Shown here one piece after another: positions 1,321-58,139 of a stretch of 64,000 bases of DNA; the stretch's first letter is position 1, and each line of letters starts with the position of its first letter. The position numbers and the translations under genes were made by a program. Origin of the DNA: Paragordius varius (Eukaryota; Animalia; Nematomorpha); contig OZ176051.1 in NCBI GenBank assembly GCA_964247055.1, positions 15,004,001-15,068,000 on the forward strand. Direction: 5' to 3'. The notes beneath the pieces are model-generated. The model saw only the letters and a program-made list of their open reading frames with translations, did no database searches and had not been told where the DNA came from.

Positions 1321-2651
1321 CTGCATTAATTGGGGGTAAAAAATAATTATTAGCTAAAGTAATAGTACAATTAGTTTACCGTAAAAACAATAATTATATT
1401 TTATTTAGCTGATAGACCAAAATACAGACCAGATCGAAAATGGTAAAATTTACAAAATTAATATAAAACTCAATCATAATTTTAGTTATTAAATTTTCAA
1501 AATAATCTAGCCCGGAAATCGTGGATTGATACGGTAGAACTAAACAAGATATTATATTAAAAATTATCAGCTGATATTATATTATATAAATATGATAATG
1601 ATAGGAATGTATCATTTAAAAGCAGGTTGTAATTTTTATAAATAATATTTTAATACTATTAGATACTATGATAATTTTTAATATATTTAGCTCTATTCAA
1701 CTAATACATAAATCAATTTATTCATTCTAAACTTTATATATTACTAAGGGGCAGAGAATGTGATGTATGAAGCCGAAAATTTAGTTACTAGTAAGTTTTT
1801 TTAAATTACTAATATTCTAGACACTGAGATCATAATATACAGAGTAGAAGCAAACATATAAGACTCATAATTTTCTAGGATAAGAATACTTTTAAAATTA
1901 TGAATTTTGACTGGCAAAATATGGAGTATAGATGTATATTGGTGAGAGACTTTATTCAACTATCATTGTTTAAAAGATACCAGTCTTTTTTTTAAATTTA
2001 TTTTTTAATTTTAATATGTTTAATTCTCTTGTATAACTAAAGACACCAGGTTTCTTGGAAGAGGTATGGAAGATATTTATAAATAATTAACGAATAATAC
2101 TAAATCTGCTGAAATATTTAACAGATTTAACCTGTATTTTAAATATTAAGCGGCTGCACAAATCCCACCGTTAAGCCATGTAATGTATACATGTGCCGTT
2201 TTAAAACCAAAATTCTATTAATATATCTGACCAATTTTTTGAGTGTGTTTTACGCTAAATCAATTTGTTTAATAACAATATTTGAAAGGAAAAACAGTTT
2301 ATCATTATTTATATTAATATTAGGAAAATTGGAGATGCATAGTATTATTTATATGTTAAAAGTTAATGAACGATGAAAATAACATTTTAACGTCTAAGTT
2401 TTTAACAAAATAGGCGCTTTCGGCTAAAACTTGAAATAAATAGATAAAAATTAATAAATACACTATTATTTATTGATTTATAAAGTAAAAACATCTTTTT
2501 TGCTCGTTTAACCAATTAGTGGTTTTTAAAAACACATTTTTGTGGTTTAGTAAAATTAAGCTTTTTTAAGTATACCTATCATATGAAACTCTAAGACGAC
2601 TACATTAATTCTAGCCCACAAAGTCAAAATCATTTAACCTTGCGTTGTTAA

Positions 2652-3234: not shown

Positions 3235-3924
3235 TTAATTAAACAATTGACACATTTTTGTAAATACGGTTTTTACAAAATTTAGGGGTTTTTAGAGGAT
3301 TTTATAGAACTTGGATTTGTTATGATTTCGTGTTTTTTAGAAAATTTTTAATGATTGTTTAAAAAGTTTTATTGTTTTTTTTAATGATTTGTTAAAAAAT
3401 TTTGGTATTTATTAATTTATTGATTTTTGAAAAATTTAAGTGGTTTTTTAAAAAAACTTAGCGCTTTTTAAAAAATTTTACTGGTTTTAGAGAGTTTTAG
3501 TGGTTTTTTTGTGTGTCTTTTTTGGATTATGTTTTCTTTAGAAGAATTTAATGTTCTTAGAAAGTTTAAGCGGTTTTAAATTTTCTTAAATGTTTTAGAA
3601 AGTTTTAGCGTTTATTTGTTCCAATACCTCTGTAAAATTATAATTTTAGCTAGATTTAGATTTTAAAAAATAAATCGGATTCCATAATAAACGATTAATC
3701 CCCCCCTAACGTAAACCACAAACTCGAAAATTTTATTGAAAACTTTATAATAAGCCATAAAATCCTAATGTATATATTGACAAAGATTCCGGTTTTTAAA
3801 TAAACTCTTAATTCAAATCAATTGTTAACTATACGGTTTTTATAACTCTTAATTCAAAATCAATTATTAACTATAAGAAAATTCACAATTATCAAAGATA
3901 AGCGTTTTATAAAGAAATTAAAAA

Positions 3925-4041
3925 GAAATGCTTGGGTCTCGGCCTGCTTCGCAGCCCGAGGAAGTCCTGCGGACTTCTTTAAGAAAATGAACCAACTCCA
4001 ATCCCTCACCCTAACCCTAGCCCACAAACTCGAAGCCCTTA
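3925..4041 (-). repeat. ~117-bp G4/twin-hairpin dispersed element (copy A)
   Basis: Reverse complement nearly identical to 19532-19648. Confidence 0.9.
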
Positions 4042-6957
4042 AAGTTGACCTTATACATTGTAATAATATTGCAAATATTCCGAAATCTTGTCCATTAAAA
4101 AACATACATTATAGGATTTACACATGGAAGAGAAAATATTAAACATTATTGTTTTGTATTCCAACAAATGTTTGCCATTAGAATAAAAAATTTAGGATAT
4201 TTTAAGATCAAGAACCACTAAATTTAAGAGAAAAAATAAAATTATACATACTCAAAGATATTCTGAAAAATTAAATTAAAGTATATACAATGATTGATAA
4301 AAATTAATTAAAAGACAATGTGTTGAAGACATGTAATACAAAAGGGTCAAGATGTAGATAGCAAAATCATAAAACATTTCAAAGCTTTTTTTTGATAAAA
4401 ACAAATCAAAAGAAAGGTCCAATGTTAAGTACATTTTTCTTATTTATTCAAGTCCACTGTAAATAAAAAACAAATTTAAGTGTTTAACCATATATTAATT
4501 GGGTGGGTCATTTATTTAAAATACGACAAAGAAATAAATTTAAATGGTTCAAAACATTTTTATAATTAACATTTCCCTCTCTCATAATTAGTAACAATGT
4601 TAAAGAATTAAAAATTCAAAGAAGAGATGAAAACTATTCAAATAAAATGCATAATTATATTGAAAAGTAATGAAAAATATATACTTAAATAGTTTAACAG
4701 ATATGGCAGCCAGCAATCAAGAGGCTACACTATTGTTTCCTAAAAATAAGATATAAAGTTAAATACTAAATCATCATTTAAAATATATATGGTAAGGATG
4801 TAAAATATAAATATCTTCTTTAAAAAAGAACTAACTGATCAATAAAAATGGTTTTTTTATTTTGCAATAAAAATTAAAGGGACAATTATAACTTTATGTA
4901 AAGATTTTTGATAAAAATTAATAATTAGTAAAAAAGCGAGCTTTGCAGTTTAAAGTTTGAAAACTTTAATAAAAAAGTTTTATAAATTTAAAATGAGATT
5001 ATCAAACTTTTGCGGTTAAATATATTATAACTAAAAATCAGTTGATTTTGTAAAAAATAAGGTTTAAAAGGTTTATACTTTAAATTTGGCCGTTAATTAG
5101 AATAAAAACCTAATCTTGGCTAAATAATTATCTATTTTTTAACTAAATAAGGTGTATTATCAAAACTACTGATTAAATGAAAAAAATCATTATTTTTGTT
5201 CAATTTTATCAGCTGATTAAATTTGTTTCAACCGTTTTTGGGGTTATAAGCCATGTTTTTAAATAAATTGTTTTTTCATATAATAAAACATTATTAATAT
5301 CAACTAATTAATTAATCTATTATAAAATATTATTATTAACCAATGTATGTTTTAAAAATTAATAATTTATATATAATTACCAAGTCCATCCATAATATTC
5401 AATTAAGCTTTTTCATTACGTTTCGTTAGCGTTTTTGAGTAGCAAATTTTGGAAACAACACATTTATCTATATCAAAATAAAGAAAAATGTAAAATAATT
5501 GATGATTTAAACGTTTCAAAAATAATGAATAAAAAAAATTTTTTCATAAAATGAATAAAATTTATTCTAAAATTTATTATTCAAAACAATTTCCAGCTGG
5601 TTAAATAAATTAGTTTGCCAAGTTGTTTTAATGTTAATGTTTAAAAGTAAAAACAATTGATTAAATAAACCAAGTGATTAAACAGATAAAAAGCAATTTA
5701 TATACATAAAAACAATCGATAAACATATTAATTATTTAACACATGAAACAAAACTTATAAAAACAACTAAATAAATAAAACAATTAATTGGTGGTTCATA
5801 ATTAAAAATTGATTAAACAAATAAAATGCAAATAATTACCCAATCCCCAAATATTCTAGCTATAATTTTCTTTATTAGTTTTGCGCAAATAATTGAGGCA
5901 ACATATTCTAAATTAAAAAAATAAAACATTATTAACATTAAGAGTTTTTTTAAAAAAACACTATTAAATGGTTAATAATCGGTTAAAATAATGTAATTCA
6001 TAAAATCAACAGTTGTGGCGTGTTTTTGCGAAAAATTTCAATAATTCTGCAGTTTTGAGAAAATTTAGCGGTTTTTAGAAAATTTTAGCGGTTTTTTTAA
6101 AAAATATTCATGTCTTTTTTTAAAAATAGCAGTAAGCGCATTTTTTGATTTAAAAATCATTAAAGCCCTTTTTAAAAAAAGTTAGCCTTTTTTAGTTTAG
6201 TAGTTTTTGGAAAATTTTTATAATTGTTTTATTTAAAAAAAATCACTATTTTAAAGTGGTTTTTAGTTGGTTTTAGCGGTTTTTAAGGATTTTAACGGTT
6301 TTGAGAAAGTTTTAGGAAATAATTTATTTAGTGCAAAACTAAACAGCTGACTTTTGCGGTTTTATATTGAATTCTTTTATAAAATAATTTAAAAAAATTT
6401 AAATTTGTAAAAATTAGCATTTTTAGTAAAAATCATTTATAATAATAATTAACTGCAAAATTTTAAAAAATAAATTGTTTAAAAAAGTGTAAATAATTAC
6501 CATATATTATGAAGAAAATTCAAGGTAACGATCTTCTTTTCGATTCCTTTCAGTTTATGCGGAAATTAAGGCAAATGTTCTAAATTAAATTATGGAATAA
6601 ATATATATAATCTGTTTGAGATGTGTTACATTATATTAATATATAAGGTTGATTTCCACGAAAAACGCCATTAAAAATGTTTAAACTTTCCCATTAAATA
6701 TTAAGTATCTTTGAAAACTCAATTGGCTTTAAGAATTTTAATTAAAATTAATAAAAATAACAATTTTTTAAGAGTGTCCTATTTGCTTTCAATATTTCTA
6801 AAACTAAATCCTTTCACCTCTTTTTTTGTATAAAATGATATATTATTTAATTTCTATATATTAAGAAACTAAATGTTTTAAACCATATAAATGTTTCAAA
6901 ATAATAATCAATAAGTTTTAAACCTATAAATAAATATAACTGTATAAAAACATGGGA

Positions 6958-9900
6958 TTAATAAAAACAACTGATTAATTAAAACAAATGTTTATTTAAA
7001 ACAACTGATTAATTAAAACAAATGTTTATTTAAAACAACTGATTAATTAAACAACTGATTAATTAAACAGCTGATTAATTAAATCAACTGATTAATTAAA
7101 CAACTGATTAATTAAACAACTGATTAATTAAATCAACTGATTAATAAAAACAACTGATTAATAAAAACAAATGATTAATTAAAACAACTGATTAATTAAA
7201 ACAAATGATTAATTAAAACAAATGATTAATTAAAACAAATGATTAATTAAAACAAATGATTAATAAAAACAACTGATTAATAAAAAGAACTGATTAATAA
7301 AAATTGATTAATAAAAAGAAATGATTAAATAAAACAACTGATTAAATAAAACAACTGATTAATTAAAACAACTGATTAATTAAAACAAATGATTAATTAA
7401 AACAACTGATTAATTAAAACAAATGATTAATTAAAACAAATGATTAATTAAAACAACTGATTAATTAAATCAACTGATTAATAAAAACAACTGATTAATA
7501 AAAACAAATGATTAATTAAAACAACTGATTAATTAAATCAACTGATTAATTAAAACAAATGATTAATTAAAACAACTGATTAATTAAAACAAATGATTAA
7601 TAAAAACAACTGATTAATAAAAACAACTGATTAATAAAAATTGATTAATAAAAAGAAATGATTAAATAAAACAACTGATTAAATAAAACAACTGATTAAT
7701 TAAAACAACTGATTAATTAAATCAACTGATTAATAAAAACAACTGATTAATAAAAACAAATGATTAATTAAAACAACTGATTAATTAAAACAAATGATTA
7801 ATTAAAACAAATGATTAATTAAAACAAATGATTAATTAAAACAAATGATTAATAAAAACAACTGATTAATAAAAACAACTGATTAATAAAAATTGATTAA
7901 TAAAAAGAAATGATTAAATAAAACAACTGATTAAATAAAACAACTGATTAATTAAAACAACTGATTAATTAAAACAAATGATTAATTAAAACAACTGATT
8001 AATTAAAACAAATGATTAATTAAAACAAATGATTAATTAAAACAACTGATTAATTAAATCAACTGATTAATAAAAACAACTGATTAATAAAAACAAATGA
8101 TTAATTAAAACAACTGATTAATTAAATCAACTGATTAATTAAAACAAATGATTAATTAAAACAACTGATTAATTAAAACAAATGATTAATAAAAACAACT
8201 GATTAATAAAAACAACTGATTAATAAAAATTGATTAATAAAAAGAAATGATTAAATAAAACAACTGATTAAATAAAACAACTGATTAATTAAAACAACTG
8301 ATTAATTAAAACAAATGATTAATTAAAACAACTGATTAATTAAAACAAATGATTAATTAAAACAAATGATTAATTAAAACAACTGATTAATTAAATCAAC
8401 TGATTAATAAAAACAACTGATTAATAAAAACAAATGATTAATTAAAACAACTGATTAATTAAAACAAATGATTAATTAAAACAAATGATTAATTAAAACA
8501 AATGATTAATTAAAACAAATGATTAATAAAAACAACTGATTAATAAAAACAACTGATTAATAAAAATTGATTAATAAAAAGAAATGATTAAATAAAACAA
8601 CTGATTAAATAAAACAACTGATTAATTAAAACAACTGATTAATTAAAACAAATGATTAATTAAAACAACTGATTAATTAAAACAAATGATTAATTAAAAC
8701 AAATGATTAATTAAAACAACTGATTAATTAAATCAACTGATTAATAAAAACAACTGATTAATAAAAACAAATGATTAATTAAAACAACTGATTAATTAAA
8801 ACAAATGATTAATTAAAACAAATGATTAATTAAAACAAATGATTAATTAAAACAAATGATTAATAAAAACAACTGATTAATAAAAACAACTGATTAATAA
8901 AAACAAATGATTAATAAAAACAACTGATTAATTAAAACAACTGATTAATTAAAACAAATGATTAATTAAAACAAATGATTAATTAAAACAAATGATTAAT
9001 AAAAACAACTGATTAATAAAAACAACTGATTAATAAAAATTGATTAATAAAAAGAAATGATTAAATAAAACAACTGATTAAATAAAACAACTGATTAATT
9101 AAAACAAATGATTAATTAAAACAACTGATTAATTAAAACAAATGATTAATTAAAACAAATGATTAATTAAAACAACTGATTAATTAAATCAACTGATTAA
9201 TAAAAACAACTGATTAATTAAATCAACTGATTAATAAAAACAACTGATTAATAAAAACAAATGATTAATTAAAACAACTGATTAATTAAAACAAATGATT
9301 AATTAAAACAAATGATTAATTAAAACAAATGATTAATTAAAACAAATGATTAATAAAAACAACTGATTAATAAAAACAACTGATTAATAAAAATTGATTA
9401 ATAAAAAGAAATGATTAAATAAAACAACTGATTAAATAAAACAACTGATTAATTAAAACAAATGATTAATTAAAACAACTGATTAATTAAAACAAATGAT
9501 TAATTAAAACAAATGATTAATTAAAACAACTGATTAATTAAATCAACTGATTAATAAAAACAACTGATTAATAAAAACAACTGATTAATAAAAACAACTG
9601 ATTAATAAAAATTGATTAATAAAAAGAAATGATTAAATAAAACAACTGATTAAATAAAACAACTGATTAATTAAAACAACTGATTAATTAAAACAACTGA
9701 TTAATTAAAACAAATGATTAATTAAAACAAATGATTAATTAAAACAAATGATTAATTAAAACAAATGATTAATTAAAACAAATGATTAATAAAAACAATT
9801 GATTAATAAAAAGAAATGATTAAATAAAACAACTGATTAAATAAAACAACTGATTAATAAAAACAACTGATTAATAAAAACAACTGATTAATAAAAACAA

Positions 9901-11988
9901 CTGATTAATAAAAACAAATGATTAATTAAAACAACTGATTAATTAAAACAAATGATTAATAAAAACAACTGATTAATAAAAACAACTGATTAATAAAAAT
10001 TGATTAATAAAAAGAAATGATTAAATAAAACAACTGATTAAATAAAACAACTGATTAATTAAAACAACTGATTAATTAAAACAAATGATTAATTAAAACA
10101 AATGATTAATAAAAACAACTGATTAATAAAAACAACTGATTAATAAAAACAAATGATTAATTAAAACAAATGATTAATTAAAACAAATGATTAATAAAAA
10201 CAACTGATTAATAAAAACAAATGATTAATTAAAACAACTGATTAATTAAAACAACTGATTAATTAAAACAAATGATTAATTAAAACAAATGATTAATTAA
10301 AACAAATGATTAATAAAAACAACTGATTAATAAAAACAACTGATTAATAAAAATTGATTAATAAAAAGAAATGATTAAATAAAACAACTGATTAAATAAA
10401 ACAACTGATTAATTAAAACAACTGATTAATTAAAACAAATGATTAATTAAAACAACTGATTAATTAAAACAAATGATTAATTAAAACAAATGATTAATTA
10501 AAACAAATGATTAATTAAAACAAATGATTAATTAAAACAAATGATTAATAAAAACAACTGATTAATAAAAACAACTGATTAATAAAAATTGATTAATAAA
10601 AAGAAATGATTAAATAAAACAACTGATTAAATAAAACAACTGATTAATTAAAACAACTGATTAATTAAAACAAATGATTAATTAAAACAACTGATTAATT
10701 AAAACAACTGATTAATTAAATCAACTGATTAATTAAATCAACTGATTAATTAAAACAAATGATTAATTAAAACAAATGATTAATTAAAACAAATGATTAA
10801 TAAAAACAACTGATTAATAAAAATTGATTAATAAAAATTGATTAATAAAAAGAAATGATTAAATAAAACAACTGATTAATTAAAACAACTGATTAATTAA
10901 AACAAATGATTAATTAAAACAACTGATTAATTAAAACAACTGATTAATTAAATCAACTGATTAATTAAAACAAATGATTAATTAAAACAAATGATTAATT
11001 AAAACAAATGATTAATAAAAACAACTGACTAATAAAAACAACTGATTAATAAAAATTGATTAATAAAAAGAAATGATTAAATAAAACAACTGATTAAATA
11101 AAACAACTGATTAATTAAAACAAATGATTAATTAAAACAAATGATTAATTAAAACAAATGATTAATTAAAACAAATGATTAATAAAAACAACTGATTAAT
11201 AAAAACAACTGATTAATAAAAATTGATTAATAAAAATTGATTAATAAAAAGAAATGATTAAATAAAACAACTGATTAAATAAAACAACTGATTAATTAAA
11301 ACAACTGATTAATTAAAACAAATGATTAATTAAAACAACTGATTAATTAAAACAACTGATTAATTAAATCAACTGATTAATTAAAACAAATGATTAATTA
11401 AAACAAATGATTAATTAAAACAAATGATTAATAAAAACAACTGATTAATAAAAATTGATTAATAAAAAGAAATGATTAAATAAAACAACTGATTAATTAA
11501 AACAACTGATTAATTAAAACAAATGATTAATTAAAACAAATGATTAATAAAAACAAATGATTAATAAAAACAACTGATTAATAAAAACAACTGATTAATA
11601 AAAATTGATTAATAAAAAGAAATGATTAAATAAAACAACTGATTAAATAAAACAACTGATTAATTAAAACAACTGATTAATTAAAACAACTGATTAATTA
11701 AAACAACTGATTAATTAAATCAACTGATTAATTAAAACAAATGATTAATTAAAACAAATGATTAATTAAAACAAATGATTAATTAAAACAAATGATTAAT
11801 AAAAACAACTGATTAATAAAAATTGATTAATAAAAATTGATTAATAAAAATTGATTAATAAAAAGAAATGATTAAATAAAACAACTGATTAATTAAAACA
11901 ACTGATTAATTAAAACAACTGATTAATTAAAACAACTGATTAATTAAATCAACTGTTTAATAAAAACAACTGATTAATAAAAACAAAA
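6958..11988. repeat. Satellite 1: ~17-bp monomer AAAACAA(C/A)TGATTAATT with higher-order structure
   Basis: About 5 kb of continuous tandem 17-bp units. A recurrent variant block (14-bp AAAAATTGATTAAT + AAAAAGAAATGATTAAAT) returns at roughly 250-340 bp spacing in the left part. Confidence 0.98.
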
Positions 11989-11989
11989 A

Positions 11990-14900
11990 TTTAACCTTTT
12001 TTAGAACTTTTAGCGTATTTTGATGAAAATTTACCTTATTTTTTAGAATTTTTAGCGTATTTTAATGGAAATTAAACCTTATCTTTTTTTAATTTTTAGG
12101 GTATTTTTTAGAATTTTTGGCGTATTTTTTAGAATATTTAGCGTATTTATTAGAAATTTAACCTTATTTTTTAGAAATTTTAGCGTATTTTAATGAGAAT
12201 TTAGCTTTATTTTTAGAATTTTTGGCGTATTTTTTAGAATTTTTAAGGTATTTTTTAGAATATTTAGCGTATTTTTTAGAATTTTTAGGGTATTTTTTAG
12301 AATTTTTAGCGTATTTTAATGAGAATCTAACCTTATTTTTTAGAATTTTTAGCGTATTTTAATGAGAATTTAACCTTATTTTTTAGAATTTTTAGCGTAT
12401 TTTTTATAATTTTTAGCGTATTTTGATGGAAATTTAACCTTATTTTTTAGAATTTTTAGGGTATTTTTTAGAACTTTTAGGGTATTTTTTAGAACTTTTA
12501 GCGTATTTTAATGAGAATTTAACCTTATTTTTTAGAATTTTTTGGGTATTTTTTAGAATTTTTAGCGTATTTTAATGAGAATTTAGCCTTATTTTTTAGG
12601 ATTTTTAGCGTATTTTAATGAGATTTTAGCCTTATTTTTTAGAATTTTTAGCGCATTTTAATGAGAATTTAGCCTTATTTTTTAGAATTTTTAGCGTATT
12701 TTAAAGAGATTTTAGCCTTATTTTTTAGGATTTTTAGCGTATTTTAATGAGAGTTTAGCCTTATTTTTTAGAATTTTTACGGTATTTTTTGGAATTTTTA
12801 GCGTATTTTAATGGAAAATTAACCTTACTTTTTAGAATTTTTACGGTATTTTTTAGAATTTTTAGCGTATTTTTTATAATTTTTAGCGTATTTTGATGGA
12901 AATTTAACCTTATTTTTTGGAATTTTTAGCGTATTTTAATGGAAAATTAACCTTACTTTTTAGAATTTTTACGGTATTTTTTAGAATTTTTAGCGTATTT
13001 TTTATAATTTTTAGCGTATTTTGATGGAAATTTAACCTTATTTTTTAGAATTTTTAGGGTATTTTTTAGAACTTTTAGCGTATTTTAATGAGAATTTAGC
13101 CTTATTTTTTAGGATTTTTAGCGCATTTTTTAGAATTTTTAGCGTATTTTAATGAGAATTTAGCCTTATTTTTTAGGATTTTTAGCGTATTTTAATGAGA
13201 ATTTAGCCTTATTTTTTAGAATTTTTACGGTATTTTTTGGAATTTTTAGCGTATTTTAATGGAAAATTAACCTTACTTTTTAGAATTTTTACGGTATTTT
13301 TTAGAATTTTTAGCGCATTTTAATGAGAATTTAGCCTTATTTTTTAGGATTTTTAGCGTATTTTAATGAGAATTTAGCCTTATTTTTTAGAATTTTTACG
13401 GTATTTTTTGGAATTTTTAGCGTATTTTAATGGAAAATTAACCTTACTTTTTAGAATTTTTACGGTATTTTTTATAATTTTTAGCGTATTTTGATGGAAA
13501 TTTAACCTTATTTTTTAGAATTTTTAGGGTATTTTTTAGAATTTTTAGGGTATTTTTTAGAACTTTTAGCGTATTTTAATGAGAATTTAGCCTTATTTTT
13601 TAGGATTTTTAGCGCATTTTTTAGAATTTTTAGCGTATTTTAATGAGAATTTAGCCTTATTTTTTAGGATTTTTAGCGTATTTTAATGAGAATTTAGCCT
13701 TATTTTTTAGAATTTTTACGGTATTTTTTGGAATTTTTAGCGTATTTTAATGGAAAATTAACCTTACTTTTTAGAATTTTTACGGTATTTTTTAGAATTT
13801 TTAGCGCATTTTAATGAGAATTTAGCCTTATTTTTTAGGATTTTTAGCGTATTTTAATGAGAATTTAGCCTTATTTTTTAGAATTTTTACGGTATTTTTT
13901 AGAATTTTTAGCGTATTTTAATGGAAAATTAACCTTACTTTTTAGAATTTTTACGGTATTTTTTATAATTTTTAGCGTATTTTTTGTAATTTTTAGCGTA
14001 TTTTGATGGAAATTTAACCTTATTTTTTAGGATTTTTGGGGTATTTTTTAGAATTTTTAGCGTATTTTAATGAAAATTTAGCCTTATTTTTTAGAATTTT
14101 TAGCGTATTTTAATGAGAATTTAGCCTTATTTTTTAGAATTTTTACGGTATTTTTTGGAATTTTTAGCGTATTTTAATGGAAAATTAACCTTACTTTTTA
14201 GAATTTTTAGCGTATTTTTTATAATTTTTAGCGTATTTTGATGGAAATTTAACCTTATTTTTTAGAATTTTTACGGTATTTTTTAGAATTTTTAGCGTAT
14301 TTTTTATAATTTTTAGCGTATTTTTTATAATTTTTAGCGTATTTTGATGGAAATTTAACCTTATTTTTTAGAATTTTTAGGGTATTTTTTAGAACTTTTA
14401 GCGTATTTTAATGAGAATTTAGCCTTATTTTTTAGGATTTTTAGCGCATTTTTTAGAATTTTTAGCGTATTTTAATGAGATTTTAGCCTTATTTTTTAGA
14501 ATTTTTAGCGTATTTTAATGAGAATTTAGCCTTATTTTTTAGAATTTTTAGCGTATTTTAATGAGATTTTAGCCTTATTTTTTAGGATTTAGCGTATTTT
14601 ATGAGAATTTAGCCTTATTTTTTAGAATTTTTACGGTATTTTTTGGAATTTTTAGCGTATTTTAATGGAAAATTAACCTTACTTTTTAGAATTTTTACGG
14701 TATTTTTTATAATTTTTAGCGTATTTTTTGTAATTTTTAGCGTATTTTGATGGAAATTTAACCTTATTTTTTAGGATTTTTGGGGTATTTTTTAGAATTT
14801 TTAGCGTATTTTAATGAAAATTTAGCCTTATTTTTTAGAATTTTTAGCGTATTTTAATGAGAATTTAGCCTTATTTTTTAGAATTTTTACGGTATTTTTT

Positions 14901-16800
14901 GGAATTTTTAGCGTATTTTAATGGAAAATTAACCTTACTTTTTAGAATTTTTAGCGTATTTTTTAGAATTTTTAGCGTATTTTAATGAGAATTTAACCTT
15001 ATTTTTTAGGATTTTTAGCGTATTTTAATGAGAATTTAGCCTTATTTTTTAGAATTTTTACGGTATTTTTTGGAATTTTTAGCGTATTTTAATGGAAAAT
15101 TAACCTTACTTTTTAGAATTTTTACGGTATTTTTTATAATTTTTAGCGTATTTTTTGTAATTTTTAGCGTATTTTGATGGAAATTTAACCTTATTTTTTA
15201 GGATTTTTGGGGTATTTTTTAGAATTTTTAGCGTATTTTAATGAAAATTTAGCCTTATTTTTTAGAATTTTTAGCGTATTTTAATGAGAATTTAGCCTTA
15301 TTTTTTAGAATTTTTACGGTATTTTTTGGAATTTTTAGCGTATTTTAATGGAAAATTAACCTTACTTTTTAGAATTTTTAGCGTATTTTTTAGAATTTTT
15401 AGCGTATTTTAATGAGAATTTAACCTTATTTTTTAGGATTTAGCGTATTTTATGAGAATTTAGCCTTATTTTTTAGAATTTTTACGGTATTTTTTGGAAT
15501 TTTTAGCGTATTTTAATGGAAAATTAACCTTACTTTTTAGAATTTTTACGGTATTTTTTATAATTTTTAGCGTATTTTTTGTAATTTTTAGCGTATTTTG
15601 ATGGAAATTTAACCTTATTTTTTAGGATTTTTGGGGTATTTTTTAGAATTTTTAGCGTATTTTAATGAAAATTTAGCCTTATTTTTTAGAATTTTTAGCG
15701 TATTTTAATGAGAATTTAGCCTTATTTTTTAGAATTTTTACGGTATTTTTTGGAATTTTTAGCGTATTTTAATGGAAAATTAACCTTACTTTTTAGAATT
15801 TTTAGCGTATTTTTTAGAATTTTTAGCGTATTTTAATGAGAATTTAACCTTATTTTTTAGGATTTTTAGCGTATTTTAATGAGAATTTAGCCTTATTTTT
15901 TAGGATTTTTAGCGCATTTTTTAGAATTTTTAGCGTATTTTAATGAGATTTTAGCCTTATTTTTTAGAATTTTTAGCGTATTTTAATGAGAATTTAGCCT
16001 TATTTTTTAGAATTTTTAGCGTATTTTAATGAGATTTTAGCCTTATTTTTTAGGATTTAGCGTATTTTATGAGAATTTAGCCTTATTTTTTAGAATTTTT
16101 ACGGTATTTTTTGGAATTTTTAGCGTATTTTAATGGAAAATTAACCTTACTTTTTAGAATTTTTACGGTATTTTTTAGAATTTTTAGCGTATTTTTTAGA
16201 ATTTTTAGCTTATTTTTTAGAATTTTTAGCGTATTTTAATGAGAATTTAACCTTATTTTTTAGAATTTTTAGCGTATTTTAATAGAAAATTTAACTTATT
16301 TTTTAGAATTTTTAGCGTATTTTGATGGAAATTTAACCTTATTTTTTAGAATTTTTAGGGTATTTTTTAGAATTTTTAGCTTATTTTTTAGAATTTTTAG
16401 CGTATTTTAATGAGAATTTAACCTTATTTTTTAGGATTTTTAGCGTATTTTAATGAGAATTTAGCCTTATTTTTTAGGATTTTTAGCGCATTTTTTAGAA
16501 TTTTTAGCGTATTTTAATGAGAATTTAGCCTTATTTTTTAGAATTTTTAGCGTATTTTAATGAGATTTTAACCTTATTTTTTAGAATTTTTAGCGTATTT
16601 TAATGAGAATTTAACCTTATTTTTTAGGATTTTTAGCGTATTTTAATGAGAATTTAGCCTTATTTTTTAGGATTTTTAGCGCATTTTTTAGAATTTTTAG
16701 CGTATTTTAATGAGAATTTAGCCTTATTTTTTAGAATTTTTAGCGTATTTTAATGAGATTTTAACCTTATTTTTTAGAATTTTTAGCGTATTTTATTAGA
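11990..16800. repeat. Satellite 2: composite of 21-22-bp modules TTTTTTAGAATTTTTAGCGTA and TTTTAATGAGAATTTAGCCTTA
   Basis: About 4.8 kb tandem array, T-rich on plus strand. Blocks recur at ~420-430 and ~850 bp offsets (e.g. 14581 vs 15432). Confidence 0.98.
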
Positions 16801-17728
16801 AATCCTTTATTTTTTAGTTTATTTACATATTTTATTCAAAGTTTTACACTTTTTTACCTATATTTTAGACAAAAGCAATATTTTTTAATTCCAAAATTTT
16901 TAAAATGTACCACCATAATCAATTAAAAATTTTAAATTAAAACAAAATTTAGTGCAATTCCTGATATTTAAGCCCATATTCTTAAAATATCCTGCTTTTG
17001 AAAAAAGTGTATTCAAGAAAATCAAATAACCCTTTAACTAATTAACAATGTTCAATCAATTTTTAAAACAAAAAATCTGGAGAATATAAATATATAGAGT
17101 CCGAAATTTACAAAATTTTATTCGAAATAAATAGAAAAGGCCACAAATGTAACGTTAATATAAGGAAAATTTATTTTTAGCCATATTTTTTAGAAATAGG
17201 ATAGTAAAATCGATGTTCAAGTTGGCAGGAAATAAACTTGATAGATAATTAATTTAACATCTTTCTTGAAATTATTTGTTAAATTCTTTAAATCAATTAA
17301 GATTAGTATACTTTGTTTTAATTTAAAATTATATTTTAATTAATTAACAGGAAAAGCCCCATACGATTAAAGCAAAAAATAAAATCACATGTTTTTAACT
17401 TTTTTAAACTTGGTTTCCTGCTCTCAAAAATAAAAAAACAAGAAAAATATTCACATTTTTAGAGATTAAAAATAGTAATTTCACCCATAATTTGTTACTA
17501 ATATATATATATATATATATATAATAAAAACAAGTACAAATTTATTTAATCAATCCTTCGGAAGTTCTTCAAACAACGTACCAAATAATATATAATGAAA
17601 ACTAAATGTATTGCAACAATTTTCAAAGATAAAATTTAAAAGTAGAGAGAGAAATTATTGGATTTTAAATTAGACAACAAAGTAAACATTTTAACATTAG
17701 TTCTTTTAGTGGTATTAAATGACTCCAT

Positions 17729-19935
17729 TTAACGGAAATATTTTCTAACGATATCTAAATCAAAATCAGCATGCATTTTAACCAAAACTGTTAACTTAAA
17801 ACAACATGAAAAATATAAAACTTACGAAAATTATTATCCAGGCAAAATCGTAACATAGGTTTTCGATATTTCATTTGAGTTCCCATTGAAATTCACCACG
17901 CATCCATCGTTGTTTTATGTTTTCTAAAAATTAAATAAAATAATTTTTACCATATTAAAAGTTTTGAGATATTGGTTACATTGTTGTTTGATTGTTGTAA
18001 TAAGGATTAGCTATGATTATTTCCTGTTCTTGATTTTCCATAAATTTCTATAAACATTATATGAATAATATACTTTGTAGGTAAAATTAATTCTCAGTCC
18101 ATGTAATTGTAGCCGGAACAAGAGAGACATAAGAAGGCACGCATGCACATTGCATTCCAAAAAATTTGGAAAATAAAAAAATGAAAAAATGAATTTTGAC
18201 TACAAATTCATTGTATATATATGAGAGGGAACTCACGTGTACGCACGTGTTCCCTCTCTTTCTTGTTCTGTCCAATCATTAAAGTGCGCCTATTCAAGAA
18301 ATTTCGTTGCTTTGTTTCGCCCAAAAAACACATTTGCAACTCACGTAATCTTTCTTGCTCTTATGCATATATAAAATATTAAATACATAATCATTACTAT
18401 ATAAGGAAATTTTGTTATATAAATTCTTTAAATTCCTTTGCGTATGATGCAATAAAAATAAATTCCTTATGTGCACAAGTCTTAAAAATGTGTGTTATGT
18501 ATTATTATGGATTAAATATCCCAAATAAATAATTTGAAAAAAAAATTAAAATAAAATTTAATTAAAATATTACTTTATTATTTAGGTATATTTAAAGTTT
18601 AGATGTATAGTTGAAAAAAATTAAATATTTATTATATGTTCTAATCAAATATTGTATTAATATTTAAAAAAGTTCAATAAAAATATATTACTATCAAAGG
18701 TTGTAATTAATAGTTTAGGATTGGTTAAGAAGCAAATCAATTCCTTTTAATTGATTGATAAAGATTTCAACCAAATTATGTCTTTAAGTTTAAAACAGTT
18801 AAAATCTAAAGGTTTTTTTAGAATTTTACTTTAAAATAAAAAGGTGAAAATATATTCTTATTTAAATTAATTATTACATTATAAATCAATCTCACCTTTA
18901 TTCAAAATATGTAAAAAATTTAAAATAAAATTGTCCACAAATCAAAATAATTTGTAAGCTAATTATTAAAGTTAATTTTTTCTTAATTGGAAAGTTGGTT
19001 TTTGATTTATTAAGATTGCCTTTGTTATAAATACATCTGAAATCATCAACCCATTCTGATAATTTATAATTTTTTGATTATTATTGAAATTATTGGTTCG
19101 CAAACTTGTAAATTATTTGATATTTAAATAAGTGAAAAATATTAAATTTAAAGTATTAGCCAATCTTATTCCTATGATAGTAACTTTGAAAAGCTAATGG
19201 AAAATTAAAATTATTTATTATAGAATCTAGACAAAAACGTATTAATTGCCAGAACAGTAAGTTATTATTTAATTTTATTGGTAACAATTGAGGTCAACAC
19301 ATAAATTTTAATCCTACATTTGAAACACGAAATTTGGTAACTTATTAAACAATACAATTAAAAAAAAGATGGAATTTTAATTAAGTTCAATTTAGAAAGC
19401 TGGATAAAGAATTTAATGTAGATTTTTATCTCAAATAATCTTGTTATCCAATGGTATTATTGACTATAAATGTTTGGTTTTAGGGTAAAAAGTGTCAATT
19501 ATTTCTAGCCAGATTAGATTTATTAAACACCTAAGGGTTTCGAGTTTGTGGGCTAGGGTTAGGGTGAGGGATTGGAGTTGGTTCATTTTCTTAAAGAAGT
19601 CCGCAGGACTTCCTCGGGCTGCGAAGCAGGCCGAGACCCACGCATTTCAATTCAAATTTGGTTTTTCTATTTCCTTTTTATTTATCTACTCAATAACCAC
19701 TTACTAAAAGACGTATTCTAATTATATAATTCAAAGAAATTTCAATAACTTACGCCATTTCTATACTTAATTTAATATTTGACAATAGTTTAGATCTGTG
19801 AAGGTTTCAGTAAGGAAGATCAGTAGATGAAATATTTTTCTAGTAGTATTAATAAGGTTACTCCTAAATATCTGAAACTTATTATTTAGATTTAATAAAT
19901 AATTTACTATTTACTCACAAACATGACCACTTACG
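17729..19935 (-). pseudogene. Divergent M13/neprilysin-like gene, C-terminal part, disrupted
   Basis: Spliced exons ...KSKKDY|AHFNDWTEQEREGTRAYT|QNSFFHFFIFQIFWNAMC resemble the M13 AY.AY..W...LPG..YT.EQLFF..FAQ.WC region. GT-AG introns at 18344-18290 and 18236-18200. Upstream pieces KLLSNIKLSIEM (~19740) and LSEWVDD (~19040) fit the IK..F / W.D region. In-frame stops present. Confidence 0.5.
19532..19648 (+). repeat. ~117-bp G4/twin-hairpin dispersed element (copy B, reference)
   Basis: GGGCTAGGGTTAGGGTGAGGG at 19550-19570; GAAGTCC-GCA-GGACTTC at 19596-19612; CTCGG-G-CTGC-GAA-GCAG-G-CCGAG at 19613-19635. Confidence 0.9.
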
Positions 19936-20299: not shown

Positions 20300-21600
20300 T
20301 AAGGTTTTCGAGTTTGTGGGCTAGGGTTAGGGTGAGGGATTGGAGTTGGTTCATTTTCTTAAAGAAGTCCGCAGGACTTCCTCGGGCTGCGAAGCAGGCC
20401 GAGACCCACGCATTTCATGATCAAATATTTTTGAAGTAATATTAAAATCTTATAATTTGAATGATTTACTTTAAAACTTTATATTTAATAAAATTGTTAT
20501 GTGATAATATAAGACTATCATCAATTAGACTTACGTAGGATATGTTTGAGAGTTAGGTAAAAAAGTAAAATTTTATTATTTGACTTATATAAATAAATCT
20601 GTGCTAAATTCAGTAAACAAATGCATTGGATCAATAATTATACTAGCTACATACAAACATATTCTACACATATATTATTACCGAATAATTAATATTTATC
20701 ACAAAATTGTTATTTATATTTTTTTGAAATGTTAATTAAAAAAATTAAAAACATTCAGTTAAATATTTAATTGATTTTGTTCTCTATCAATATTTAATTA
20801 AAACCTATTCAATAATTTTTTTACATAGAAATCGCTATTTTTTATTATAATATATTACATTTATAAATTATGTTTCTTTCAAACAAGACCACTTAAATTT
20901 TAAAAATAAAAACTTGATTTAAGTTTTAAAATGATTTGATCCCAAATAAGGTTTTTGAGTTTGTGGGCTAGGGTTAGGGATTGGAGTTGGTTCATTTTCT
21001 TAAAGAAGTCCGCAGGACTTCCTCGGGCTGAGAAGCAGGCCGAGACCCACGCTTTTCATGAATAAATAGTTTTGTAATAATATTGCATCTTATATTATGT
21101 ATGATTTACTACTAAACCGTATATTTAATATTATACATATGTGATAATGTAAGATTACCATCAATTAGACTTACGTATGATATGTTGAGACTTTTTATTT
21201 TTTGAATAATATATAAAACCTATGCTCGTTTCTGTAAACAAGAACATTGTATAAAAAATTATTATAACTCTCAAACATTACATTCTACACATATATGGTT
21301 ACCCAATTTTTAATATTTTTCCTAATTTAGACAAATGTTTTTTGTATTTTGTCGAATTTGTTGTAATATTAATTTAAGAAATATTAAAAGCATTCAGCAA
21401 TCAAATATTTAATTGATTTTGTTTTCTTTTGAATTTATTTAAAGCCTATTCAATAATTTTTTTACATATAATTCGCTCTTTTTTATCATAATATATTATA
21501 TTTATAAACTAGGATGTTTATTTCAAACAAGAACACTTAAATTTTAAAAATAAAAACTTGATTAAGTTTCAAAATGATTTGAACCCAAATTGCAATGAAT
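20300..21600 (+). repeat. Local ~650-bp direct tandem duplication; each unit starts with the G4/hairpin element (copies C 20300-20416, D 20947-21057; decayed E ~21670-21780)
   Basis: 20300-20945 and 20947-21600 align over their length (shared ccatcaattagacttacgta and caagaccacttaaattttaaaaataaaaacttgatt-like segments). Confidence 0.85.
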
Positions 21601-23879
21601 CTTTGATATTATAAGGAGAGAATTGGATGAAGAAATTTTTTATATTTTTTAATGGGGGTAAGTTCTTTCTTTTGAGTTAAGGAGCCAGTGTTGGTGCAAA
21701 GGATATAAGTGGGTTTATTTTCTTAAAGAAGTGTTCAGGACTTTCTAGGGCTGCGGATCAGGTTGAGACTCATGCATATTTAGAGTAACCTTGCTGTTTT
21801 AAATGCAAAACAAAGTATTCATTTTATAATAGTAAAAATACTTAAAAAAATTGTATTCCTGTATCCATTTTAAATTTTTGTTAAATATATTAAAGTTGCA
21901 AGATATCACATATCAAAGATAAATAAAAATGTGAGGAAATTTTTTAAATGGTTGCATATGAGTAAGGTTAGTAAATCAAAATAATAATTTGACACTAACC
22001 TGGTTTTTACCCTAATATATTGAATTTTAACCCATAATAATTTTATTAACATTTGAACAAATTTTACCTTTCAAAATTTATAATTAATATAAAAATACCG
22101 AACACGTAAAATTTTATAAAAAAATAATTGATTAAATTCAGCTAAACATATTTACACAAGTAATTATATTATTAGTTAGAAACGATTATACAAATTGGAT
22201 GTTGACCAAGTGTCTTGACTGCTTATTATAATTATTATGACAGATTTATTTCGGAATGTTTTCGAAGGATATATATATTTTTAGTATTTTGATACATAAA
22301 AAAATTATAATTATGGAGAATATAGCATCAACAGATTTTTATTCTAAAATTTATTTAAATGTCATTTTCTTAAAATTATATCGCTTATGCCAGATGGTAC
22401 TCATAGATACATAAATTCAAATCCAAAAATTGTGGTTCGCTCATTTTTAAGGAAAATTATGCTATTGGAGCAGAAAGGTTTTTTTAAATTTTTTTTATTT
22501 TATATAGATAATTGGTTTTGAAAATGCCATAATTTGATATAATTTACGAAATTTAAATGTTATACGTGAAATTTCATACAAGATGTGGGACAAAGACCGG
22601 GAGAAATTAGTGAGAAAACACGCGATCAAATCATACACCAGCCACAACAGAAACCAACCACATCAAATAACACAATTGATGAATACATATCTATTAAGAT
22701 GTTAAACTATTCAATAAATTCATTTGTATGCAAACCTATTTTCTTGTAAATTAGTATGCTCATTCAAAATAAGGCCACAAATACGTTTCAAAGATAAAAA
22801 GTGTTAAATTTAAAACTTAGTAGTTACTTAAACATGCAATTATGGCGAATTTTAGTACTTTTAATTTAAAGATTAGATATAATCAGTAGTAAAGGTCAAA
22901 AGTTAATTGCAGAAATAATTTCAGATAATATTTGAAAGAATAGCGCTTATCAGTTGAATATGCTAATTTTGATTGTATATATACCTAATACCACCCAATA
23001 TATCTTATTAAATATAAAAACAGCTTTGATTCAACTATCATGTAATTTTTAAAATGCAGGTTTTAAGTTATTATCAAAAGTTTTCTAATTTGTGGGCTAG
23101 GGATACAACACAACTGTAAGGAATGATGTTAAACAGCCAAATCTCAACCAAACAGCCAGATCACCCCCAATGATGAAACCAAATCGATTACCCAGACAAA
23201 CTCAAGACAAGACATCGATAATAGCCAGGAAAGACCCTACCTGGTGAGAAACCGTTAAAAACTCGTCCACTTTTGTTAGAAGAGGGAATTGAGTGATGTT
23301 TTAATTGGAACTTACATTTATTACCATCTCGTTTCGAAAAAGTCTAACAGTTATTTTGTATGAACATTTTATGTATTACTATGTTAGAAAATAACCTCGT
23401 ACCAACGCTTTTAGTTTTATTATTTTATTGAATCAACTTGTATATACCCGCAGGATAAATTTTTGTGATATATATTTTTTTGATATTTAAACCTTGTGTT
23501 TTTGAAATACAATAAATATCTCATTTACGCGTAGTGCCCCTGCTTATGTTTCAAAAATATCATTTGTATTTAGTTTATTTCTGACAAACTTTATATTCTT
23601 ACTGTATTCACACAATTATAATTTTCAATATATCTAATACGGAGTGATATTGAAAGTTTTGTACCTAGAGTTTATATATATCTACGATAGTTGAAACAAT
23701 CGATTCATATCTAATGCATTGATACGGTTAAAATATCCTAATGAATATATACCATTAACTGCTAAATTCACCCTTATACATTCAAATTCATCCTTGAAAA
23801 ATTCATATTCACCCTAAAATAAATATAGTGTTTTTTAAGATTAAAAATTACTTATATTTTTAAAAAACAACTACGAATG

Positions 23880-32298: not shown

Positions 32299-32812
32299 GA
32301 AATGCATGCGGACCTTTAAGAAAATGAACCAACTCCAATCCCTCACCCTTACTCTAGCCCACAAATTCGAAACCAATAGAGTGCTTTAAATTTGGATCAA
32401 AAAAAATTTTGCTCAAAACCGTAATAAAAACAGCTTTAGAATGTCGAAATGTGATAAAGATTAAAACAGAAGTATTAGCAGTGTTGTAACCTAATAAAAT
32501 AAGTTTCAAGGTTCAACCTTGGGGTTTTTTATATTAAAATATTTAATCAGCTGTTTCTTAAGAAAAGATAAAAGTAATATAATCTGTCTTATAAAAAAAT
32601 TCTGGTCTAAAAATATTAATATAAAAGATAAGTCAGAAAATACTGACAATTTTGTGTTCCCTATTTAAAAATTAATCATCAAAATCTGCAAAATTCAGAG
32701 ACACAGGTTTAAGTATGAAATTAAAAAGAAATGCGTGGATCTCGGGTTTGCGGACTTGTTTAAGAAAACAAACCAAGTCCAATCCTTCACATAACCCTAG
32801 CCTACAAACTCG
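32299..32812 (-). repeat. Two decayed G4/hairpin element copies (F 32299-32374, G 32728-32812)
   Basis: Retain ...aagaaaatgaaccaactccaatccctcac... and ccctagcc(c/t)acaaa(c/t)tcg. Hairpin part partly deleted. Confidence 0.75.
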
Positions 32813-32969: not shown

Positions 32970-33995
32970 TATAATGTTTGGAATTCAATCTTGTTAATGA
33001 TATTAATACAAGTAATTTGTTTCTAATATTGATATACGATGTATGCGTTTATGGTGATCATATCTTTGATTAAGTTAAGGAATCTCATGAGATGCCAAAA
33101 AATCACTAATTTTAGATAATTCTGAAAATTACAATCGCCATCATTTTCTGGGATGATTCTATCAACTAAAATATAAGATAGAAAGGTATTTACTAAAGTA
33201 TAAGAAAATTGATATCTGGATTTTAGAAGTATTTTCAACATAATTTTAAATATTGAGGGGTAAAACATCCAAAGTTTGAAAGGGGACTAAATAAGGTTGA
33301 CCTGCCTTTAACAATTAAATTTGCAAATAAAAAATTTCTTCATGAAAATAAATTCAAAAATGATATTTTATGTGTTTTATTTACATTTTCATTCTACCAG
33401 CCAAATTTTAAAAAAATATGAAAAGGCTTGTATATGATTTCACCAATGACGCCAAATAAATAGAAACAAATATTTTAGAAAACAAGAGCATTCCAAAAAC
33501 CAAGCAGGCAATGTTTGCTTTGGTGAAGGGAATAGTTTTTCTTATTTTTTAGATTGGTAGAATGAAAAAGCAGATTGAACACATAAAATATCATTTTAAA
33601 ATTTTTTTCATGAAAATATTTTTTTGCAAATTTTGTTGTTGAAAGTGCAGGTCAACCTTATTTATTTGCCTTAAAAACTTTGGATGTTTTAGCACCCAAT
33701 ATTTAAAATTATGTTGAAAATACTTCTAGAATCCAGTTATTAATTTTTTAATACTTTAATCAAATACGTTTCTATCTTATATTTTAGTTGATATATTTAT
33801 CCCAGAAAATGATGTTGATTATAATTTTCAGGATTATATACATCTAGTGATTTTTTTGGCATCTCATATTATTCCTTAATCTAAGTTATGATCACCATGA
33901 GCGCACACCGGATCGTATATCAATATTAGAATCATCAAAATTACCTGTATTTATATCAATAAGAATGCTATTTTAAACAATGCTTCCAACATTAA
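32970..33995. mobile_element. Foldback/MITE-like element with ~430-bp inverted arms (32970-33400 and 33553-33995)
   Basis: Arms are reverse-complementary with moderate divergence (e.g. aaataaggttgacctgc vs gcaggtcaaccttattt); ~150-bp spacer. Confidence 0.8.
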
Positions 33996-40680: not shown

Positions 40681-41003
40681 TTTAATGTTAAATCGGGGCC
40701 AAAAATTATCGATAAACTCTATTATAAAAAATTCTTTCAGGCAGACCAATTTTCTTTTCAGATATACTAATTATGTACTTTAATGAAATAAATTTTAAAT
40801 TTACAAGAATGGCAGTTAAAGTTAAAATTTGTTGTCTAGTGTAATTATATAACTGAAATATAATTCCTTAATCATGTGTTTTAAATCTCTATTATGTTTT
40901 TATTTACCATATTTTCGGTTTCAAAGAAAATGAGGGGAATTAATTAATTTATTAAAAATATTTACTGTTAAAATGACATACTCTTAAGTTTGATTGCAAT
41001 ATA

Positions 41004-47542: not shown

Positions 47543-47605
47543 CTAGCGTAAATCTCGTGCTGCTACGCAGCCCGAGGAACTCCTTTGGACTTCTGGGGGG
47601 GCTAT
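47543..47605 (-). repeat. Variant twin-hairpin end of the G4/hairpin element (copy H), followed by CTAG
   Basis: Reverse complement gaagtcc-aaa-ggagttc ctcg-g-gctgc-gta-gcagc-a-cgag atttacg CTAG t. Confidence 0.65.
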
Positions 47606-48976
47606 TTTTCCATTTTTATAAATATATAAATTACCATAAATAAGGTTTTATTATCCATATATCTTTTAACATCCTATACATATGATAGATACTCTTTACT
47701 CAGCAGCTATTATCTAAGAAACGCCTGACTAAAATTTTTGTTTTTTAACAGGGAATACGAAAAATCCTTATCGAATTCTTACAGTCTCATACCTTGGGCA
47801 AAAAAATACAATCAAAAAATTATTTTTGTGGAGTTTGTTATTTTTTGAAAAAAATGGCATTTTACGGGGCGGGTAAGAGGGCCTAAATCAAAAAAGAGAG
47901 ACGACTATGTTCGGCGCAATCGGAAATAAGTAAAAAATTATATTTGAAATTGAATGGTCCAACACGTTCTCCGGATAATTGTCTCAAAGACACGATTTTT
48001 GTGGACTTCTGTTTTTAAAAAAAACCCGTTTTTCACACGGGGTAGGCCCGAACTGGGGGCCTATTTCAAAAAAGGGCGAAGCTATAGTCGGGGCATTCAT
48101 TAATGATTATATTTTTTCGAAGTTTGGATTTGAATGGGTTTACCGGTTTTCCTGTACCAGATCACAACAGCATTTTCCATTTTTATAAATATATAGATTT
48201 CAATTTACTGTATATTCTGTTTATAATCTTTTTTTAAAAACAATAATTACATGGAATGTACATATAATGTAAAATTATTTTTTATATTACTAATTGTCGG
48301 GTGCTAAGAGAAAATTCAATCGTTGTCACATTCAATCTCCTGTTATATTGTAATTTTATAGTTTAGAAGGGAATAGTTGACTTAAGAAAAAATATTTATT
48401 GAGATTTTTACGTTTTCTCTATAAATTTCAATTTTACTGTTAAAGTATGTCTGATGATTATAAGGAGTTTAATTATTTTAGCGCTGTTTATATCGAAAAA
48501 CTAGGTCCAATAATTTTTTAAAGGTTAGAAATGGTAATCCAAAAATTCAGATTATTTATTCCGAAAAGTTAATAATTGAATTATTGTGTAACGTTATTAC
48601 TCTAGAAATAGTAGCTGTTTTTTTCATTCCACGGAAAGCACTTTCATTCAGGGATTCAAATGAGTTTTAACCTAATAATACAAATATCCTAAAGTTATAC
48701 TGACAAAACACAAAAATATAATGAGGAAATTTTAAGACAACCATACTTTTTAAGCCTTATATGCCCTATATAATTTATTTAATTACAATTGTAAAATATT
48801 CATGGGAGTTGAGTTATATTACAATGAAAACATTTATGTTAAAATTAATGTATGAGTGATATCACAATACAAAAATTATATATTAACTATCATGAAGATA
48901 CAATTAACTTTAATTACGTGTATAGTCTTATAATTGTTTGCAATTATATAGAACGAAAGTAGGATCGAACTTAACA

Positions 48977-57360: not shown

Positions 57361-57535
57361 AGATATGGGGTAGGCATATGAATACAGAAGCGGAGCAAAT
57401 AATAAAATTAAATAGTTCGATATATGATGCAATATAGTTTTGATTCAGTAAAAGACGTGATCAACTCATAAACAAGTGTTGAGTTGTGGTAACATTTTTT
57501 TAATTATCAAATAATAATTTTTCGGATTGTTTTAA

Positions 57536-58115: not shown

Positions 58116-58139
58116 TTAATGGCCATTTGACACCTTATT

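Follow-up and report, generated by a model that had tools for sequence, protein, structure and literature searches.

A telomere-like tract fused to a Helitron-type tail at satellite edges in Paragordius varius: a chimeric relic probably kept uniform by gene conversion

A 64,000-nt stretch of the Paragordius varius genome (G000:C2:15004001-15068000, hereafter the window) raises the question of how a short GC-rich sequence can recur in nearly identical copies within very AT-rich DNA. The window lies 130-190 kb from the end of a 15.2-Mb contig, in an assembly of 110.6 Mb in 44 contigs, and its GC content ranges from 15 to 37%. At positions 19532-19648, on the plus strand, it holds a 117-nt unit of ~52% GC, here called the module, embedded in DNA of ~22% GC. 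The module consists of a left arm, a telomere-like G tract (GTGGG/CTAGGG/TTAGGG/TGAGGG), a 25-nt spacer, two hairpins of which the first directly abuts the second, and a 13-nt tail (Table 1). We judge it somewhat probable that the module is a non-mobile chimeric relic that is kept uniform mainly by short-tract ectopic gene conversion. On this reading the module would unite a worn telomere-like tract, with one exact TTAGGG between variant hexamers, and, beyond the 25-nt spacer, the terminal ~52 nt of Helitrons from an old sub-lineage within the genome's canonical family, the CTAG terminus having been lost.

An initial annotation, made from the letters of the window only, had named eight copies of the GC-rich unit and three short stubs. 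All eight copies were recovered by BLASTN and profile searches; of the stubs, the one near 23090 was found, the one near 2605 weakly so, and the one near 3700 was not. Folding as single-stranded DNA (ssDNA) recovered both of the back-to-back GNA-triloop hairpins that had been described, on either strand (z = -3.0 for the plus and -2.2 for the minus strand). The G3N3G3N3G3N3G3 motif was likewise confirmed, with three occurrences in the window, all in the three pristine copies, and 0 expected from shuffles; a 21-mer from the left end of the module occurs six times, again with 0 expected. Across the genome, a 30-mer spanning the hairpins gave 508 matches at up to 3 mismatches and a 30-mer from the G tract gave 152, with 0 for the reversed control of each, and the module itself is present in ~150 copies. 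An alignment of 24 unique copies places the most variable interior stretch in the final 9 nt of the spacer.

The annotation had also suspected a link to Helitrons, and this was borne out by homology of the twin hairpins to the 3' terminus of the genome's own Helitrons. The Helitron Rep domain (PF14214) has matches at about eight loci, mostly broken. On the minus strand of one of these (L048), a Rep domain is accompanied by a PIF1 helicase domain (PF05970), and ~2.5 kb downstream in the same orientation (L047) stands a twin hairpin, then ATTCACGCTAG, then T. Short complete Helitron copies (L054, L063 and window 47543-48197) start with TC after A and end with a twin hairpin and CTAG before T; the CTAG end that had been reported for the copy at 47543 is thus real, and is followed by T. 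We defined the 5' head of the family from such non-autonomous copies. An attempt to define it from the Rep loci was abandoned, as the left borders common to those loci are exon borders. A search pattern with free loop bases found 476 ends genome-wide; the first 100 of these (on C1 and C2) are nearly all of the canonical type, with loops GAA and GTA, and are evenly spread along the chromosomes. Canonical ends number ~330 and are dispersed. As for the autonomous Rep-helicase element that the annotation had proposed to look for, a Rep/PIF1 locus with a homologous twin hairpin is present, its end being of the canonical CTAG type, which the module lacks.

The alignment of the module to the canonical Helitron end covers ~52 nt, from the base preceding hairpin 1 through the ACGC of the tail, and BLAST comparison of the module with the ends downstream of the Rep loci gave 82-91% identity across 27-50 nt. 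The differences are few: the middle base of loop 1 and of loop 2 (GCA and GAA in the module, GAA in hairpin 1 and GTA in hairpin 2 of the canonical end), two bases in one stem arm, and ATTTC in the place of the CTAG terminus. Both families have G-N-A triloops closed by C-G, and it is the middle base that differs between them. A hairpin ~10-12 nt before the 3' end, as is characteristic of Helitrons, is present in the module by virtue of the homologous twin hairpins. A single site in the genome (L062, C2:6.42 Mb) joins module-type hairpin variants to CTAG followed by T, with a body of the canonical family. As a true Helitron end with module-type hairpins, this site links the module to the canonical Helitrons. 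An abundant Helitron sub-family combining module-type hairpins with CTAG was also considered, but only this one copy is present. Taken together, the homology to the canonical ends and the single intermediate at L062 indicate, at the level of sequence comparison, that the hairpin half goes back to a sub-lineage of the genome's own Helitrons that is now minor or extinct.

Two of the non-autonomous Helitrons have more than one head motif. That of L054:335-1734 (G000:C2:1426335-1427734) has three ~500-bp tandem units before a single tail, and at least two of the units open with the 5' head motif (339 and 1386), a many-heads, one-tail layout. In the canonical copy that ends at 47543, a second, slightly mutated head motif (window 47606-47633) lies ~30 nt upstream of the tail and makes with it an 88-nt head-plus-tail unit.

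The arrangement of the modules along the chromosomes is regular. Spacing and clustering were taken from 130 listed module sites. These form 17 clusters, spread over seven contigs; 12 clusters are no farther than 1.25 Mb from a contig end, and four or five are internal. Neighbouring modules of the same orientation are mostly 0.6-1.1 kb apart, and neighbours of opposite orientation alternate at ~10 kb, the median spacing being 10.6 kb for the 35 (-,+) pairs and 11.8 kb for the 29 (+,-) pairs. About 45 module copies were read together with their flanks, as were three cassettes, from three clusters on three chromosomes, in which inverted module runs flank a block of two satellites. In all three the G tracts are directed toward the satellites and the hairpins outward. 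The cassette of the window (Table 1) has a counterpart at C7:8529300-8544200, composed of a minus-strand module, 2.6 kb, a homologous 17-bp satellite (83% identity), a 32-bp satellite, 3 kb and a plus-strand module. The cassette at C1:14630800-14640600 has the same parts, including a homologue of the 17-bp satellite at 71% identity, with its whole interior reversed in order and strand and one module lacking its hairpins. Satellites of period 32 (C7) and 20 (C1) sit where the 21/43-bp satellite does in the window, their relatedness being judged by eye. Between the window and C7 cassettes, the unique inner segments could not be aligned, with only noise-level matches of 57-64%, and at this level we rejected both a palindromic cassette interior and homology of these inner segments. 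We propose that short module runs of the same orientation, inverted on either side of a satellite block, make up cassettes of 8-24 kb, and that tandem and segmental duplication would have increased the number of these cassettes, for the most part within the distal 1.25 Mb of chromosomes. At the junction of the two abutting satellites of the window, the GC skew switches from -0.16 to +0.36.

Given a Helitron-type tail in so many places, we asked whether the module might be the terminus of a working mobile element, either of an unusual mini- or non-autonomous Helitron sub-family or of the 8-24 kb cassette, moving with its modules as terminal inverted repeats (TIRs). The same 117 nt do occur in at least 13 mutually unalignable flank contexts, the cassettes are bounded by inverted pairs, and non-autonomous Helitrons typically have only their ends in common. 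The termini of the module, however, are not those of such an element. Its 3' end has no CTRR, the ACGC being followed by ATTTC where canonical copies have TAG and then T, and its 5' side has no TC head after A; the inner end begins with TAAGG and fades into the flank. In the window the head motif of the family has a single occurrence, which belongs to the canonical copy (48197), and the left half of the module has no similarity to it. As the annotation had stated, the 117-nt unit has no TIR and no target-site duplication (TSD), none being present in 17 flank contexts, and the window and C7 cassettes likewise showed no TSD at their outer edges. No Pfam match to a Rep or helicase protein, or to any other, lies near the 17 module loci, and of the asymmetric terminal inverted repeat of Helitron2/Helentron elements there is only a 5-nt GTGGG/CCCAC complement, whose 3' arm comes after the hairpins. 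Nor are the edges sharp: a weak consensus continues for ~15 nt on the G-tract (inner) side and ~10 nt on the tail (outer) side, and in six contexts the outer flank contains additional decayed module-like stubs.

The genomic context also argues against mobility. Positional homologues in diverged duplicated blocks hold the module at the same place, module copies are clustered in tandem and segmental arrays whereas the canonical family is dispersed, and the cassette interiors are unalignable although their ends are 98% alike, which is not expected from recent transposition of the whole unit. The 529 bp between the copies at 20300 and 20947 (unit X) were examined as a possible transposon body together with the module, but X is low-copy DNA with only ~6 relatives, also low-copy, and is not such a body; in the relative at C9:4.29 Mb, an unrelated 22-bp repeat precedes X, which is uninformative as an empty site. 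Lacking CTAG, a 5' head, TIRs and TSDs, the module is the stranded tail of a Helitron, to which a telomere-like tract is fused, and is neither a mini-Helitron nor a miniature inverted-repeat transposable element. The rolling-circle mini-element of the initial annotation is therefore not sustained, and we consider a working mobile terminus of either kind very unlikely.

Why, then, are the copies so alike? In eleven paralogous pairs with alignable flanks, the flanks differ at 342 of 3146 positions (10.9%), with many indels besides, and the modules at 30 of 1266 (2.4%). Module divergence is 4.6-fold lower than that of the flanks (Fisher p = 4e-24, for pairs that are not fully independent); two recent C7 pairs show no contrast between module and flank. 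A block on C2 (window 17.8-22.0 kb) is homologous, at ~77%, to a subtelomeric block on C9 (L009) and offers an internal comparison. The module at 19532 differs from its positional homologue (L009:1506-1622) at 4 of 117 sites (96.6% identity), with identical hairpins, in flanks that are 77-88% identical. The module at 21664 and its counterpart at L009:2755 have 11 derived changes in common, along with 24 private to the former and 13 to the latter, mostly from G/C to A/T. Within the local tandem repeat, the modules at 20947 and 20300 are 97% identical over aligned bases and the remainder of the unit is ~80% identical. Because the decayed pair changes at least as fast as its flanks, the pristine modules must be actively maintained.

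We propose that the maintenance is by short-tract ectopic conversion among the ~150 copies, probably GC-biased, and that divergence of the flanks, too great for them to pair, would confine it to the module. Once a copy has drifted too far, it would quit the conversion pool and then decay under strong AT-ward mutation pressure. The alternative of greatest weight is that selection maintains the module as a host element. It would then be a cis-acting site at satellite edges, under purifying selection on sequence and hairpin structure; candidates would be an origin, a boundary for chromatin or replication, or the binding site of a protein that recognizes Helitron-type hairpins. The 4.6-fold deficit in divergence under AT-ward mutation pressure would suit such an element, as would the retention of G-N-A in both triloops, in module and canonical ends alike, with a family-specific middle base, and the fixed position and orientation of the module at both cassette edges on three chromosomes.

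The distribution of variants within the module bears on both explanations. In the complete list of single variants of the hairpin 30-mer, the 5 unpaired sites (loop 2 and the G.G mismatch) account for 7 distinct variants and the 25 paired sites for 8, of which 3 still form a G.T pair. This suggests that the hairpins matter or form in vivo. Their formation in vivo, which is probable, would account for the excess of variants at unpaired sites and for the recurrence of clean hairpin deletions (L059, L060, L066, and window 32301 and 32728). These same deletions are difficult to reconcile with a selected element, as are the copy pair that has decayed at or above the rate of its flanks, the absence of an Rfam match, and the absence of a Pfam-recognizable gene within 1.5 kb. 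The G runs have no protection either: among the matches listed, the 9 G-run sites have 6 distinct variants, the 6 linker sites have 2 and the 15 spacer sites have 6. Moreover, sites that are structurally free (the middle base of loop 1, most of the spacer and the linkers of the G tract) are as uniform as the stems across contexts with unalignable flanks, which favours conversion over selection on structure alone. The initial annotation had proposed comparing substitution in stems and G runs with that in the rest of the element, and the outcome is divided, the stems varying less than the loop and mismatch sites and the G runs being no better kept than the linkers or the spacer. On balance we regard a host element maintained by purifying selection as unlikely, though it is the nearest competitor to conversion.

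Several points nevertheless weigh against a relic kept by conversion. Selection on structure predicts that paired stem sites vary less than loop and mismatch sites, as they do (Fisher p = 0.003); to explain this by conversion alone, one must also suppose a higher mutability of unpaired bases. The constant position of the module at both edges of the satellite block could reflect function, and the telomere-like tract contains only one exact telomere repeat. Conversion itself is read from the pattern of uniformity rather than from mapped tracts or tree incongruence. The flanks read belong to ~45 of the ~150 copies, and the satellite content is known for 3 of the 35 (-,+) intervals. A further explanation combines the Helitron ancestry with function, in that a domesticated Helitron end signal would be used by the host at the edges of satellite blocks and kept by selection rather than conversion. 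The module would then act as a structure-forming, telomere-seeded boundary or processing site, through which the satellite segment would be replicated, insulated or excised as a unit. The orientation of the modules fits this proposal, since to either side of the satellites the G-rich 3' ends are directed outward, like those of a small linear chromosome; we nonetheless think such domestication distinctly improbable.

The telomere-like tract itself requires separate consideration. The telomere repeat of the genome is TTAGGG, as CCCTAA repeats at the contig starts show, and of this repeat the module has a single exact copy, between CTAGGG and TGAGGG; one variant copy has two. The initial annotation had offered, as its other possibility, a signal for chromosome breakage or telomere seeding, which could serve, for example, in programmed DNA elimination of satellite blocks. 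A telomere-type G tract beside structure-forming DNA, modules on both sides of the satellite blocks and clusters that are mostly near chromosome ends would all be compatible with such a role. A search of the assembly for telomere repeats continuing from the G tract of a module found none, the sole match being an internal variant copy, and of the four contig starts read, which open with telomere repeats, none was seen to open at a module. Conservation of the G runs is not above background. The orientation of the cassettes also implies that the G-rich 3' ends are directed away from the satellite block, so that telomeres would be seeded only on the satellite fragment and never on the retained outer parts of the chromosome. 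The seeding proposal thus finds no support in the assembly, and we give it hardly any credence. As to the G-quadruplex motif, four G3 runs with loops of 1-7 nt are present in the three pristine copies of the window, as a sequence pattern only. At the start of C7 (L034, G000:C7:1-600), ~80 nt of the telomere array are followed by ~140 nt of a short repeat of the GTTAAAGTT type, beyond which the array continues.

The module can be placed among known systems by its likenesses and differences. With the right terminal sequence (RTS) of the genome's TC...CTAG Helitrons it has in common the ~52 nt that comprise both abutting C-GNA-G hairpins and the first bases of the tail. It differs in having no CTAG, no 5' head and no coding or head-repeat body, in its loop bases and one stem arm, and in the clustering of its copies. 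Human subtelomeres have interstitial telomere-like islands at duplicon borders. Like these islands, the module contains short degenerate telomere repeats in duplicated blocks near chromosome ends; unlike them, it has only three to four hexamers, joined to a transposon end, in both orientations. The subtelomeric Helitron-like repeats (SHlR) of cnidarians, HSymSHlR of Hydractinia and NveSHlR of Nematostella, resemble the module in being inactivated Helitron derivatives, locally amplified near chromosome ends and adjoining satellite arrays (PMC11934779). They form continuous tandem arrays of megabase size from a 372-bp unit, in a comparison made by description and not by sequence (PMC11934779), whereas the module has a 117-nt core, ~150 copies, a fused telomere-like tract and a layout of inverted pairs around satellites. 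In Paramecium, Helitrons insert into telomeric repeats, and there, too, a Helitron end stands beside a short telomere-type run and satellites are carried by the elements (PMC13085455). The Paramecium repeats, however, are C-strand repeats after the RTS, variable in length and belonging to the target (PMC13085455), and those of the module are G-strand repeats, 25 nt upstream of the hairpins, of fixed length and within the repeated unit. Finally, d(GCGNAGC) mini-hairpins and d(GNA) triloops, studied as oligonucleotides, are reported to be unusually stable in ssDNA (PMC13037366, PMC3201870). Hairpin 2 contains GCGAAGC and hairpin 1 contains C-GCA-G, the motifs of such stable hairpins, the folding of the module being a prediction.

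Helitron remnants near chromosome ends are already known, and for this reason the identity of the module is in itself unsurprising. What is unusual is that a GC-rich 117-nt chimera of a transposon end and a telomere tract withstands strong AT-ward pressure about five-fold better than its surroundings, and that it marks both edges of satellite blocks in mirror orientation on several chromosomes. Our literature searches gave no description of a telomere-tract and Helitron-tail chimera that brackets satellites. If conversion is responsible, the module would be a clean natural case of concerted evolution through short tracts, with a probable GC bias, in an animal genome that is very AT-rich; if selection is, a transposon stop signal would have been recruited as a chromosomal boundary or processing site. 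The cassette layout, the internal decay control and the single intermediate Helitron end are the contributions of the present analysis.

Table 1. Module, its parts and copies, and associated features in the window
Feature	Position	Strand	Basis or remark
Module, reference copy for BLASTN and profile searches	19532..19648	+	117 nt
Telomere-like G tract (GTGGG, CTAGGG, TTAGGG, TGAGGG)	19548..19570	+	G3N3 x4 motif at 19550-19570
Spacer, 25 nt, from G tract to hairpins	19571..19595	+	Alignment of 24 unique copies
Hairpin 1, 7-bp stem, GCA triloop	19596..19612	+	ssDNA fold; nearly invariant in 24 unique copies
Hairpin 2, 5+4 bp stem around G.G mismatch, GAA triloop, GCGAAGC core	19613..19635	+	ssDNA fold
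Tail, homologous to Helitron terminus up to ACGC, then ATTTC replacing TAG; no CTRR	19636..19648	+	
Inverted partner module beyond satellite block, 98% identical	3925..4041	-	BLASTN, profile search
Pristine module, 99%, first in local tandem repeat of ~647 bp	20300..20416	+	BLASTN, profile search
Module, 91%, G tract with 6-nt deletion	20947..21057	+	BLASTN, profile search
Decayed module, 74%	21664..21778	+	BLASTN, profile search (match at 21670-21778)
Module, hairpin 2 and tail deleted	32301..32374	-	BLASTN, profile search
Module, internal deletion taking most of the hairpins	32728..32812	-	BLASTN, profile search
Hairpin half only, part of canonical Helitron	47545..47594	-	BLASTN, profile search
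Left-end stub of module	23079..23105	+	E 0.013
Weak stub	2603..2632		E 0.19
Canonical non-autonomous Helitron, 655 bp	47543..48197	-	TC head at 48197 after A; twin hairpin and ACGCTAG ending at 47543, then T
Cassette: module (-), 2.9 kb, 17-bp satellite, 21/43-bp satellite, 2.7 kb, module (+)	3925..19648	.	
17-bp satellite in cassette	6956..11986	.	Tandem Repeats Finder (TRF); ~300 copies
21/43-bp satellite in cassette	11997..16801	.	TRF; ~113 copies of 43-mer

The window contains no tRNA, no rRNA and no Rfam match at gathering thresholds, and over 19450-19730 Rfam gave zero matches at E values up to 1. A coding context for the module was rejected, since Pfam gave no match in window open reading frames (ORFs) of at least 75 amino acids or within 1.5 kb of the 17 module loci. 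An organelle genome was ruled out by the absence of tRNA and rRNA together with the 15.2-Mb contig, the 110.6-Mb genome and the TTAGGG telomeres, and a ciliate genetic code by the finding that its apparent ORFs are merely spurious ones in AT-rich DNA. No exact match to the hairpin core was found in a metagenome collection, which is uninformative for an animal sequence.

Other repeats were noted near the modules. A 22-bp tandem repeat with CACCCTT-type words adjoins module-bearing DNA on C9 and in the window (window 23748-23855 and 39452-39515, L060 and L067). A ~600-bp repeat, with copies that are 91-92% identical (window 2648-3265 and 57532-58145, and L009:1910-2503), splits the C9 homologue of the module flank and is probably a small transposon. 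Two segments of the window match their own reverse complement (32991-33965, ~1 kb at 78%, and 41002-41235, 234 bp at 84%) and are palindromic or foldback-like.

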